Positions 2,510 through 7,111 of a stretch of 7,548 bases of DNA are shown here, piece by piece. A model generated the notes under the pieces. It was not told the origin of the DNA. It did no database searches and saw only the letters and a list, made by a program, of their open reading frames with translations. The first letter of the stretch is position 1; the number at the start of each line of letters is the position of its first letter. Made by a program: the position numbers and the translations under genes. The stretch is from Bugula neritina (Eukaryota; Animalia; Bryozoa), in contig CAXIUT010000214.1 in assembly GCA_964035545.1 (NCBI GenBank), positions 1 to 7,548 of the forward strand, in the 5' to 3' direction.

Positions 2510-4074
2510 ATGTAAGACATCGAAGGCGTTCATAAATCAGTCATCATCATTATCCCGGGAATAGCGAGTTTGGCCTCTATAGTAAACGGATACTTTCTCA
2601 TCTATTTTACTATGATCTTCGAACATGTCAAGTAGTATAACTCTTTCAATGATGAATAGTTTCTTCATTTCTATTTTCCTCTGATGGATGCAGCTCTACC
2701 ACTAGGTGCATTTATTGGTATACTTTTATTTATTTAGGTTCTTTCGTCTACAACCATTTTGTCAATTCTTTTGGATAAAAAAAAGCAATGCAGTATCTAG
2801 ACTATATTTCAATAGTAGCCATATTAATGCAACTATGTTCTTTAAATATAGTCCTTGTAAGCTTTTCAAGATTAATAATGGGTTTTTACTGTGCAATAAC
2901 GATGGCATTGATTCCTTCTTGGATTTTATCTATGTCTCCAAGTTTTCTAGGTGGAATATTAGGTACTTTTAGTCAATTAGCAATCGCAATAGGAATGTTT
3001 TAGGTCTACTGTATGGAATATTTTCTATAAGATACTTCTCTTAGCAAAGAATTAAGAGTTCGATTATTTATTTCCTTGCCTTTACTGAATATCATTGTCC
3101 ACCTCATAGGAATTCATAAAGTAGGTTTTGACAGTCTCAATCGAATCATAGCTCGAAAATAAAATCCTTAGATAGTAAGATTTATGAAGACTATGTATGG
3201 AAAAGATTGGAGAAAATTTGCCAAATAATTACGTACCTTTAAAAACGAACCAAGCATAGAGGTATCACATGAAAATCACTAAGATGAAATTCAAGTAGCA
3301 GTGAGATAGACTAATGAATAGAGCATTAATTTTACCTAAAGTAAAGAATCAAAGGATAATCCTAATTTAGTGATAATGAAAAAAATCGAAACAATGTTAT
3401 TGAGAAAGCTGATGTTTTTATAACAAAATAAAATAGGAATCATGCTCACATTTGCTAATCAATTTTCAGGATTTATGGTCATTATCTACTATCTTTTGGA
3501 AATATATAAAAAACCTGAAGATAGCAGTCATTCTATAAACAATGGAATTAGAATCAATTTTAGCATTTTGCTTTATCTAGGATCTTTTCAAATAGTTTTA
3601 ACCTTGATCAGTGGATTTCTTATCCATAAGTTCGGAAGAAGAAGAATCATGTTGTCTGGCTTAGTTATAATAGTAATTTCTTTATTATTTGTCATCATTA
3701 ATGTCGGTCATCACAATGCGGAGATAATATTTTTGTTTGGGTATATTTTAGGGTATTCTATATCAGTAGGTCCTCTTTTCATGATGTATGCTATTGAAAC
3801 AGGAGCTAATATTTAGCTAGTTTTGCAAATTAATTGGTTCTTGATGTTAATATTGAGTTTTATCACTCACAAGTATATTGAAAATGTTAGTTAATCGATG
3901 GTTCTTGGAATATTTTGTGTCAGCTCTATTATCTCTTTGATATTTTTTGGTCAAAAAATGATATAAACTAAAGATCAGGATTATTAGGAGAATATTTAAG
4001 GAAGAAAAATACAAAATTAAGGATTATAGGTTCTTTATAGTCAAATTAGAGAATAATAAGAATAAAATTCATGA
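2510..4074 (+). CDS. MFS sugar-porter family transporter (divergent), about 514 aa; join(2510..2717,2738..4074)
   Basis: ATG at 2510 (M*DIEG...). After removing a 20-nt intron the frame is open to TGA at 4072-4074. Motifs: PLGAFIGS, FG*KK, SRLIMG...IPSWILSMSP, GILGTFSQLAIAIG, ANQFSG (cf. QQFSG), KFGRRRIMLSG, GYSISVGPLFMMYAIE, INW, I*TKD (cf. PETKG). Two hydrophobic halves separated by a charged loop. Confidence 0.9.
2718..2737 (+). other. 20-nt spliceosomal intron (GTATACTTTTATTTATTTAG), phase 1
   Basis: GT...AG ends and T-rich. Removal restores GAFIG|SF and shifts from frame 2 into the frame carrying the rest of the transporter. Confidence 0.9.
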
Positions 4075-4186: not shown

Positions 4187-5032
4187 ATGTCAGATATTAA
4201 ATAAATAGAATCCTTAACTAAATCTCTCTCTGAAATCGTAAATAACTTGAATAACTACATCTCTCATAAAGAAACTTCTCCAATCGTCAAGAAGGAGTCA
4301 GTTTACAAAAAAACATCAGATATGACTTATATGAGTTTCTTAGTCAAAGTTCTTTCACAGAGACCACCAGTTTAAGTTGTGCTGAAAAAGCAAAGCTATT
4401 GTTTACAGGAAGATCTTGAACTACTTCTTGAACTTTCATCTTATGCTAGTATCAATAATAAATGTTTCTAAGAAATATCAAGTAAAAAGAAACTTAACAG
4501 AACTATCTAAAGTATGAAATCAAGATACTATGAATGTCTTTCAAAAGTTGGTGAAGCTTAAATGAAAAAAATAGTCACCTGGATTGAACAATAAGGGGTG
4601 TAAGGATTTATTAATTTTGAAGCTGGTTAGTTTAAAATCAGTTTAAATGATCCTAAAGCTGAGAAAAAGACATAGAAAAAAGAAGTGAAGAGAAATAGAA
4701 CCGATTCTTTGTAAAATTTATAAAAAAAATATGAAAAGAAGAAATAAGTACCTAAAAAAATAGTACCAACAAACTGCAAAGAACTTAATGATATACTGAA
4801 ACTGTATTCAAAGATGGTGAATATACCAATCAAAACTTTATTATAAAATCTTGATCAGGTTTCAGGTGATTTTGTTCAGTTAGACAATTATATCGAGACC
4901 AAAGATAAAAAGTTACTATGGAACTCCTAAGAAGATGAAATTTTAAGAAAAGGAGGAATTGAGGTTTAACTTTTAAGAAAATATCGAGGAGCAGGAGTAG
5001 AGGCTAGAAAGAAATACCTTGGAATTAAATGA
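4187..5032 (+). CDS. RAP1: Rap1/TERF2IP-like protein (Rap1-type Myb domain + Rap1 C-terminal RCT domain), 281 aa
   Basis: One frame from ATG 4187 to TGA 5030-5032 with many in-frame TAA/TAG, so the ORF track missed it. Myb-like segment at about 4397-4540: YCLQEDLELL...NNKCF*EI...RTI*SMKSRYYECL (cf. Rap1 FTxxDDxAIL...GNALWKAM...HSWQSLKDRYLKHL). Lys/Glu-rich linker follows. RCT-like end: LDQVSGDFVQLDNYI...LLWNS*EDEILRK...LLRKYRGAGVEARKKYL (cf. SG...IWSxxDDxxL...LxKKFGxxNVxRRxxF). Alignment is from memory, not a search. Confidence 0.75.
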
Positions 5033-5097: not shown

Positions 5098-6552
5098 ATG
5101 ATAGAGGATATAAATAGCAAAAGTGAGCCAGAGGAGATATCTTTGTTGAATATAAACACTAATGACATTTTGATTGAGTAAAAGAAGGATAAAATAACCT
5201 ATTTTTTGCCTTGTTATGTGAGAATTAAGGTAAAAACTGTCAAGCAACTTGAAATAGAATCATTGTCTGGCATGATTTCAGGAACTCTTTTGTTCTCTTT
5301 TTATTATGGAAACCTTCCCAGAGACTTAATTGACCAGTTCACAGGTCCTGATGCCTCCAAATCGATATTATTGCAACTGGGCAGACAAGAATCTATTGAG
5401 CTTAAAGAAGAAAAAGGTATCACATTTAAATAAGATCCAGCCAATAAATTCATAGACTATGTAATTAGAACATAATTTGATTGCCATCTAACTGGAGATG
5501 TGGTATACACTCCATTTTAGATATTGAACCTGACTCTATCAGTCACAGTTCAATCGGTAATTTTAAATCCCAAAATAAACAATGGAAAGAAAATCATTGT
5601 TAAATTTAACTGCATGAATAGCAGTAATGTCACCACTATTGATTCCTTCGATTGCACTTTTGGAACTTATAATCTAGCTGATTATTTTCTAGATAGTGAC
5701 TATACCAATAAAGCTCTCGACAGATTTTCTCCTATTTCTGTCATGAATCCTGACTATAAGATTCTAGAAGACAAAGTCTTTGCTGTAAAAAATAAAAAGA
5801 AATTAGATCCTGAAGAATAAGATCCAAAACCAGCTTTAGAGCATGAAAATAGTAATGTTAAGCTCATTAGTCTTCAAGAATAGAAGAAATAAAACAAAAA
5901 TATATCTGTTAATCCTAGTATTGGTCCTAAAATAGACAAAGAAGAAAAAATAAAACACTATCAATATACCCATTTCAGAATACCTCTGTATAAGTATCCA
6001 GGAGCTTCTTTGATTTCCATATTCATCCCAGTATATGTCCTTGGAATCCTAAATCTGGCAATATTCTTTCAAGATACAGTTGTGGGAGATAGAGTGGCCA
6101 ATATTGCAACAATCACTTTGGCCTTTATTGCCTTCTTGCCCACAATTAACGAAAAAATTCCTTAAACAAGTGATATCAAAATGATAGAGATCTTAATTTA
6201 CATCCAGACTGCTGCAACTATGTTGACTTTAGCACACACCTTATATATAAGAAACTAAAATGGAGATACTTATAGCTTTGAATGGTAGTCAAGCGTATTA
6301 TTCTTCATTACTTTGGCAGTTAATGCGATTACTTTTGGCATAGTTGTCGGCATGTTTGTGATACACAAGATATGGTGGTAGAAAATTTACAATCAGAAAA
6401 GAGAAGTCAAGATTAGAAACAAGTTGGTAAGAGAAGATTGGGAAAACAAGGAGTGTGACTAGTATTTTAAAAAGTGGATCATGAACAATAGAGTTTCTGT
6501 TTTAGGAGTTCAAACTGATAAAATCAAACTAGAACAACCAAAGAAAGCATGA
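5098..6552 (+). CDS. Cys-less (Pro-loop) pentameric ligand-gated ion channel subunit, 484 aa
   Basis: One frame from ATG 5098 to TGA 6550-6552 with 12 in-frame TAA/TAG. Beta1/beta2-like CYVRIKVKTVKQLEIESLSGMISGTLLFSF; Pro-loop YTPF*ILNLTL (cf. F/YPFDxQ); pre-M1/M1 FRIPLYKYPGASLISIFIPVYVLGILNLAIFF; M2 GDRVANIATITLAFIAFLPTI; M2-M3 loop IP*TSDIKMIE; M3; M4 at about 6295-6363. Confidence 0.82.
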
Positions 6553-6623: not shown

Positions 6624-6830
6624 ATGGATATTGGAGAGAGGCTTAATTTCAATGGAAAAATCATACAATACTGTTTGAACTTGAACAACTGGAAAGCCAA
6701 CGAAAATCAAGAGGAAGCTTTGGATCGTTTCCAAGATTGTATGACAAGATCAATTGTTGCTGAACAACTTTTTAGAGCATAACTCAACAGAACTAGACCT
6801 GGAATATTTAAAGAAGAAGAAGAAGAATGA
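6624..6830 (+). CDS. Small hypothetical protein, 68 aa (true start may be 6592, see findings)
   Basis: ATG 6624 to TGA 6828-6830: MDIGERLNFNGKIIQYCLNLNNWKANENQEEALDRFQDCMTRSIVAEQLFRA*LNRTRPGIFKEEEEE. GC is higher than in the flanks, and the TGA-TAA stop context matches neighbouring genes. Confidence 0.65.
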
Positions 6831-7027
6831 TAAAAGCATGATCCATTAAATAAATAAATATCTGACACTTTTGGATAATATCATTTGTTACTATTCATTA
6901 CAAATATATCAATAAAAGCAATTTTAAATACCAAAATACAAAAAACATCTTTTTCAAGTGTAAATTTATTTTTGATTTAAATTTATCTTTAAAATATAAG
7001 GTTATGAATTTAATTCATCTATTTTAA

Positions 7028-7111
7028 GGGGTTGGGGTTGGGGTTGGGGTTGGGGTTGGGGTTGGGGTTGGGGTTGGGGTTGGGGTTGGGGTTGGGGTTG
7101 GGGTTGGGGTT
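7028..7111 (+). repeat. Internal telomeric tract, (GGGGTT)14
   Basis: 84 bp of perfect GGGGTT repeat in the same orientation as the right terminal telomere, followed by 350 bp of unique sequence. Confidence 0.97.

Follow-up and report, generated by a model that had tools for sequence, protein, structure and literature searches.

The window, by which we mean the whole stretch of 7,548 nucleotides that was analysed, is a complete mini-chromosome with telomere repeats at both ends (C4A2 at 1-63 and G4T2 at 7463-7548). On its forward strand, the frame at 4187-5032 contains no internal TGA, and 15 of its 281 sense codons are TAA or TAG, which are read as glutamate (Glu). The preliminary description had singled out this frame as one missed by standard ORF calling, and its coordinates were found to be exact. 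Owing to the peritrich code, neither standard ORF calling nor most tools can see the gene. Upstream, a (sugar-)transporter gene ends at 4074, leaving 112 bp to the ATG; downstream, the next gene begins near 5098. The gene and its parts are as follows.

4187..5032, + strand: complete intron-less coding sequence (ATG at 4187, TGA at 5030-5032, 281 codons), collinear with 15 orthologs without frame gaps
4187..4261, + strand: N-terminal acidic helix (aa 1-25), specific to the ciliate family, with a conserved LT+SL..IV..L; helix 2-24 in a low-confidence model of ortholog L023
4313..4372, + strand: conserved KKTxDMTY..FL.K.L motif (aa 43-62), without known family, seen in ortholog alignments and also kept in the diverged copy of samples X2/X3
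4382..4546, + strand: Myb-like domain, Rap1 type (aa 66-120), with an SY.LQED helix, an SI.N.. insert and an NRT.ESL+SRY third helix
4547..4660, + strand: conserved acidic post-Myb module (aa 121-158), without known family, E.EMKKIV.W.E.EG..G.L.F followed by a short hairpin
4661..4765, + strand: Lys/Glu-rich basic linker with a conserved KR.R (aa 159-193), net charge +3 to +7
4766..5029, + strand: RCT-fold domain (aa 194-281), six helices in the predicted model (AlphaFold2 model of ortholog P0013, 81% identical)

Column conservation in the family is highest in the RCT (0.84), followed by the post-Myb module (0.77), the Myb (0.75) and the KKTxDMTY motif (0.71), and the linker is the least conserved of the named segments. 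The post-Myb module forms a helix and two short strands in a low-confidence model, and no Pfam or PDB match was found for it. The charged linker that had been described between the Myb and the C-terminal domain was located as the K/E-rich stretch at aa 159-193, and judging by its sequence the KR.R within it is possibly a nuclear localisation signal. The full translation of the frame, in which the 15 codons were given as E, Q or X, was used at the level of alignments; searches and folding used stop-free pieces or orthologs.

The window is contig C223 of a parent assembly of 216 Mb. C4A2 ends like its own are common to many small contigs of this mixed assembly (including C10, C11, C14, C15, C58, C87, C95 and C291), and in many of these TAA and TAG stand for Glu. 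This is in contrast to the large contigs C1, C2 and C8, which are on the megabase scale, carry intron-bearing genes in the standard code, have a Rap1 gene of their own and are ~35% G+C where sampled. Given the C4A2-ended small contigs and the difference in code from the intron-bearing large contigs, the window therefore comes from a ciliate travelling with another organism's assembly. It is the DNA of a ciliate passenger (epibiont or contaminant), separate from the main organism of the assembly, which is called the host below. DNA near-identical to the window was present in sequencing runs under three organism labels from three studies.

Telomere repeats are not confined to the ends of these molecules. 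The window has an inner G4T2 tract at 7029-7103, ~360 bp before the terminal tract at 7463-7548, and the small contigs C10, C11, C14 and C15 also have internal telomere tracts besides the terminal ones; these could be alternative telomere-addition sites or assembly joins. Directly before the inner tract of the window there is a frame of ~68 codons (6625-6831, + strand) with TGA as its stop and a run of Glu at its end.

TGA is the sole stop codon in the code used by the window gene, and this code is the peritrich nuclear code, table 30, in which TAA and TAG both specify Glu. Table 30 had been put forward for the translation from the outset, and several kinds of evidence bear it out. When HSP70 genes on the small ciliate contigs are compared with the host HSP70 copies, their in-frame TAA and TAG codons stand mostly opposite Glu and very rarely opposite Gln. 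Orthologs of the gene at 4187-5032 have GAA or GAG at many of the TAA positions of the window, and two SNPs between strains swap TAA/TAG with GAA/GAG, including TAA>GAA and GAG>TAG. Table 6, which reads TAA and TAG as Gln, was rejected since both the HSP70 alignments and the ortholog codons point to Glu. The number of sense TAA/TAG codons varies from 1 to 15 in ~280 codons per ortholog, and the same Glu position alternates between GAA/GAG and TAA/TAG among close relatives.

Conservation of the gene and its N-terminal end

Word searches of ENA, Logan and JGI assemblies with a stop-free 60-aa piece from the C-terminus of an ortholog returned 22 fragments, and a search with a 56-aa N-terminal piece returned two fragments whose contigs carry full orthologs. 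The contigs behind the fragments, together with a profile scan of metagenomes, yielded 15 further full-length orthologs from metagenome and SRA contigs and thus a set of 16 members with the window. The 16 proteins are 272-291 aa long, 44-82% identical, collinear and encoded in the same code; all of them start with MSE or MSD and end with +KYL.. before a TGA. Other searches were negative or returned the host: the metagenome scan with the N-terminal piece of the window gave no match, no paralogs of the gene were found in the assembly, none of the RNA runs searched was found to carry it, and scans of the assembly using PF11626 and PF08914 picked up the host Rap1 gene alone, the window not being among the matches.

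Related strains differ from the window in 13 codons of the frame, and 11 of these changes are synonymous and 2 non-synonymous. Samples X2 and X3 hold a second copy that is 85% identical at window 4305-4444 and 4775-4836, and this copy is either a paralog or belongs to a co-occurring sister species. Here, 10 of the 15 changed codons are synonymous and 5 non-synonymous, and a 12-nt length difference between conserved blocks is in frame. These data show that the gene is real, under purifying selection and conserved in at least 16 lineages. Its neighbours are partly conserved, with a sugar-transporter gene upstream and a channel-like gene downstream. In several relatives a flavoprotein gene (PF02441) lies between the sugar-transporter gene and the Rap1-like gene (at 1036-1560 in L020 and at 1242-1571 in L029/L030); it is absent from the window, so gene order on the mini-chromosomes is only partly conserved.

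Just 65 residues lie N-terminal to the Myb, and a Pfam search of the stop-free N-terminal halves of orthologs did not find a BRCT. A BRCT encoded by a hidden upstream exon was considered and rejected, as only 112 bp separate the upstream gene from the ATG and 16 of 16 members share the start; between the end of that gene at 4074 and the start of the next near 5098 there is no room for an extra exon or a BRCT. With the short N-terminal stretch, the conserved MSE/MSD start and no Pfam match, the absence of an N-terminal BRCT that had been noted from the sequence is upheld. According to a 2024 review, all known RAP1 homologs have a BRCT, a Myb and an RCT, and such homologs are traced from kinetoplastids to mammals with no ciliate named (PMC10813129).

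The Myb segment and the C-terminal domain

By its sequence, the Myb segment is closest to a Rap1 Myb. In a single pre-specified comparison, phmmer aligned window aa 67-118 with residues 41-96 of the animal Rap1 P0003 at 17 bits (P 3e-7), and in this reference protein Pfam places Myb_Rap1 at residues 45-98 (27.8 bits). An HMM built from seven family members scored 19.7 bits against P0003 for the Myb stretch and 21.2 bits for the whole protein (P 6e-9), and hhalign of the family with the Rap1 Myb of P0003 gave 93.9% (E 1.6e-7) at 38% identity over 61 columns. Against the seven canonical Myb repeats of P0002, the Myb part of the family HMM had no match (0/7); it is the C-terminal WT.EED motif of the HMM that weakly matches these repeats. 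Furthermore, when exons of the host Rap1 gene are aligned with the window protein, Myb1, Myb2 and RCT2 keep their order and the two Myb exons abut. A word search with the Myb region of P0003 gave no match, and no PDB match to a TRF Myb was found by sequence.

Ortholog L036, which is nearly free of stops, passes the Pfam Myb_DNA-binding cut-off of 24.4 with 25.2 bits; Myb_Rap1 covers profile positions 1-55 of 59 in it, at 13.3 bits versus a cut-off of 27.1. L023 matches Pfam Myb_DNA-bind_6 at E 0.0075. The generic Pfam pass in L036 speaks for a Myb as such. As to the Rap1 type that the preliminary description had assigned to it, the match to the Rap1 Myb of P0003 is in favour, and the cut-off of the Myb_Rap1 profile itself was missed. 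The AlphaFold2 model of the N-terminal half has a pLDDT of 63, with Foldseek matches that amount to noise, and at this low confidence the assignment of the Myb therefore draws on sequence. The domain is weakly basic, with a net charge of +1 to +4 (0 to +2 for the third helix NRT.ESL+SRY), and a telobox-like recognition helix is absent when judged by eye against the telobox motif.

For the C-terminal domain, an RCT fold is predicted. AlphaFold2 was run on P0013 (100 aa, stop-free, 81% identical to window aa 183-280) with alignment A1, and the resulting model has six helices, a mean pLDDT of 80.7 and a pTM of 0.62. On the window protein, the predicted helices fall at about aa 197-211, 215-224, 229-238, 247-255, 258-267 and 270-278. 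When the model was compared with 350,542 PDB chains by Foldseek, ranks 1-7 were all Rap1 RCTs (3k6g, 4bjt, 3owt, 4bj5 and 3cz6), and the match to human 3k6g had a TM of 0.70-0.76, an rmsd of 2.1-2.5 Å, 21-22% identity and a probability of 1.00. VIA-align superposed 87 of 92 residues on 3k6g (Z 12.4, rmsd 2.2 Å) and gave Z about 7.6-8.0 over 92-94 residues for the yeast Rap1 RCTs. A scan of 48,161 PDB representatives that was independent of Foldseek returned 3k6g as the sole structure with Z >= 8 (Z 12.2, rmsd 2.6 Å, 88/93 residues), the yeast Rap1 RCTs at ranks 2-3 and then UBA/CUE domains at Z <= 6.6, whose alignments extend over just the first three helices. In the ESM-Atlas, a search by fold returned first a chordate TERF2IP cluster (Myb_Rap1 100%, Rap1_C 100%) at a TM of 0.71 and an rmsd of 1.9 Å. 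The preliminary description had named failure of the C-terminal 80 aa to match or fold like an RCT as one outcome that would overturn it; the model of the stop-free ortholog, compared with human TERF2IP and yeast Rap1, is predicted to fold like an RCT.

Two observations accompany these searches. Helices one to three of the model, which span residues 12-61 of P0013 and roughly aa 193-242 of the window protein, superpose on many UBA/CUE domains (Z 4-6.6, rmsd ~2 Å), and the RCT may, as modelled, contain a UBA-like sub-fold. The second row of the ESM-Atlas search is a 57-member cluster of 287-aa proteins without a Pfam family, at a TM of 0.72 over 86 residues. This length agrees with that of the ciliate family, and the cluster may consist of members of it from organisms with completely called genes.

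At the level of sequence, the similarity to known RCTs is marginal. Pfam Rap1_C (PF11626) is the commonest match in alignment A1, with 17 of 21 members as opposed to 3 of 21 for a generic Myb, and its scores across the orthologs range from 14.7 to 18.7 bits (best E 0.0013) versus a gathering score of 24.2. The best scores (L023 18.7, L022 17.5, L033 16.3 and P0013 15.7 bits) are thus all below the cut-off. As a scale for these numbers, a genuine host Rap1 exon reaches 21.9 bits, and the animal Rap1 P0003 is undetected at E <= 0.1. The match is limited to profile positions 43-84, the second half of the profile, and the profile end always falls on the protein end; for the 60-aa tail of L022, Rap1_C is the sole Pfam match (E 0.0043, 17.5 bits, profile 47-84). 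Direct comparison of the ciliate tail with animal RCTs by sequence gave P 0.007-0.02 (hhalign P 0.023). A profile of the C-terminal domain had no match among PDB sequences, Pfam and PDB searches with the window's own stop-free pieces, which are too short, returned nothing relevant, and the language-model neighbours of the tail were Myb clusters at scores of <= 0.81, to be taken as leads only.

With no PDB profile match and marginal sequence scores, what carries the RCT assignment is a single predicted model, derived from a shallow alignment of closely related sequences. The RCT-like domain that had been proposed at the very C-terminus was recovered by Foldseek, by the 48,161-chain scan and by the ESM-Atlas, and Rap1_C was its most consistent Pfam match. 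The profile check that had been suggested alongside stayed below both Rap1-specific cut-offs, at best 18.7 bits for 24.2 with Rap1_C and 13.3 bits for 27.1 with Myb_Rap1.

Interpretation and rival readings

We consider it probable, at roughly 0.7, that the gene encodes a small (~280 aa) protein of the Rap1/TERF2IP family in a peritrich-code ciliate, with a Rap1-type Myb and an RCT fold in canonical order, without a BRCT and with three family-specific modules. The domain order of Rap1/TERF2IP that was recognised at the outset is retained, as the Myb (aa 66-120) is followed by the linker (aa 159-193) and by a helical domain (aa 194-281) that runs to the last residues. The designation as a candidate ciliate Rap1 homolog without a BRCT is supported, and its scope is the peritrich-code ciliates. 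The literature search found no paper describing a ciliate Rap1, in agreement with the earlier statement that none has been characterised.

How such a protein might work can be sketched from its better-known relatives. Human and fission-yeast Rap1 reach telomeres via a partner bound to the RCT, and budding-yeast Rap1 binds DNA itself. Because its Myb is weakly basic and without a telobox, the ciliate protein would be an adaptor like human and fission-yeast Rap1, without sequence-specific DNA binding. By analogy, its charge pattern (a weak Myb, an acidic post-Myb module and a basic linker) also resembles that of the human and fission-yeast proteins and is unlike that of budding-yeast Rap1. The basic linker would then serve for entry into the macronucleus, and the RCT would dock on a short helical motif of a putative protein that binds duplex G4T2. 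Once at the telomere, the protein might contribute to keeping end joining or recombination in check, or to the control of telomere length. A telomeric role, a partner of the RCT and nuclear import are what we infer for this protein. It is a good deal more doubtful that we are looking at the first identified component of a ciliate duplex-telomere complex, be it a minimal BRCT-less Rap1 whose RCT points to a G4T2 partner or a protein whose Myb, post-Myb module and linker contact duplex DNA directly. If such direct contact were true, a single protein of this small size could cover the chromosome ends of a highly fragmented macronucleus, of which there are very many.

The same structural and sequence evidence would also fit a Rap1 descendant that works outside telomeres, as an adaptor in transcription or at chromatin, with an RCT that recruits a non-telomeric partner. 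The telomere link of the protein is one that we infer, and the loss of the BRCT and the ciliate-specific modules could accompany a changed role. There are precedents in budding-yeast Rap1 at promoters and in the extratelomeric roles of mammalian RAP1. Still, we regard this as unlikely, as no part of the ciliate protein is more conserved than the RCT and RCT-bearing Rap1 is at telomeres in every organism studied (PMC10813129).

A different origin altogether would be a lineage-specific Myb/SANT protein, in which a UBA-like three-helix unit and a degenerate Myb-like WxxEED helix-turn-helix mimic an RCT by convergence or model bias. Only Rap1 RCTs span the whole six-helix domain, at 2.2-2.6 Å and 19-22% identity and far above the next fold, even if the first three helices on their own align with UBA/CUE domains at Z 4-6.6. 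The WS.EED..L tail does resemble the start of a Myb repeat, and its low-scoring language-model neighbours are Myb clusters, but its Pfam preference is for Rap1_C (17 members) over Myb (3 members). Pfam Rap1_C stays sub-threshold and the model comes from a shallow alignment; against this, the domain sits at the extreme C-terminus behind a Rap1-like Myb, which is the order of Rap1. We therefore hold such mimicry to be quite improbable. Finally, that there is no gene here but a chance open stretch in AT-rich DNA under a permissive code, as the 15 standard stop codons in 281 codons and the lack of the gene in any RNA run could be taken to mean, is refuted to near certainty by the conservation data, with 16 collinear orthologs sharing start and stop, an excess of synonymous changes among strains (11 versus 2) and in the diverged copy (10 of 15, with the 12-nt length difference in frame), and also by a domain that is foldable and recognisable in prediction.

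For the Rap1-family reading, the interest lies in what the protein may lead to. Telomeres and telomerase were discovered in ciliates, and to our knowledge only the complexes of the G-overhang have been characterised there (TEBP alpha/beta; Pot1a-Tpt1-Pat1-Pat2). In other eukaryotes, a Rap1 whose RCT is intact provides the docking site for the duplex-binding factor, and the family is therefore a concrete bait for the ciliate factor, that is, for proteins covering the double-stranded part of ciliate telomeres. It would also mean that the Myb-RCT core of Rap1 can exist without a BRCT in a protein of 280 aa. Should Tetrahymena or Paramecium prove to have relatives, established model organisms could be used to test this directly. 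A practical point lies in where the gene was found, namely in the contaminant or epibiont fraction of an unrelated assembly and hidden by the peritrich code.

Comparison with known Rap1 proteins

Among animal proteins, the Rap1 P0003 (1056 aa) has a Myb that aligns with that of the ciliate protein over about 55-60 residues at 38% identity, with the SIN-N insert included. Both P0003 and the host Rap1 share with the ciliate family the RCT tail motif W..(E/D)D..L ... L+K(F/Y) ... V..R+K(F/Y)L, aligned end to end. They differ in being three to four times longer and in having a huge low-complexity linker, and the sequence similarity of their RCTs to the ciliate one is marginal. The host Rap1 gene, at C1:5595914-5599808 (L017 3376-7369), encodes its Myb in split exons and its RCT in two exons, and its linker exon is very long and of low complexity. 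Its RCT exon, compared with 1.84 billion representative proteins, had 3 matches, one of them useful (P0003); with P0003 as the sole clear relative, Rap1 evolves fast in the host lineage.

Likened by description only, the RAP1 of Trypanosoma brucei is another divergent protist Rap1 that sequence searches barely recognise, and it works with a TRF homolog (PMC10813129). Again by description, it is unlike the ciliate protein in having a BRCT, a Myb, a Myb-like/RRM region and an RCT. A scan of our assembly for TRFH (PF08558) gave no match, not even for the host, and is thus uninformative. The Myb proteins that bind through a telobox (TRF1/2, Taz1, Tbf1 and plant TRB) are unlike the ciliate protein, whose third helix NRT.ESL+SRY has a net charge of 0 to +2 and is without a telobox.

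Rap1 of S. cerevisiae (3cz6, 3owt, 4bjt and 4bj5) has the RCT fold in common with the predicted ciliate domain, at Z about 7.6-8.0, and in yeast this RCT is a platform on which Sir3, Rif1 and Rif2 dock. The yeast protein binds DNA directly via two tandem Myb-type domains, whereas the ciliate protein has one Myb, with no telobox-like recognition helix. Moreover, the yeast RCT is ~150 aa long, and the compact ciliate RCT is closer to the human one.

Human RAP1/TERF2IP is ~400 aa long. In contrast to it, the ciliate protein of 281 aa is without a BRCT, remains below the cut-offs of Pfam Rap1_C and Myb_Rap1 and adds the N-terminal helix, the KKTxDMTY motif and the acidic post-Myb module; we know of no TRF2-like partner in ciliates. 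The two are alike in having one Myb, then a linker that is acidic or charged, and finally an RCT of six helices that closes the protein. On the human RCT in 3k6g, a complex with TRF2, the ciliate model superposes at Z 12.2-12.4 and 2.2-2.6 Å over 87-88 of 92-93 residues with 19-22% identity, and the weakly basic Myb of the ciliate protein would fit the adaptor role of human RAP1.
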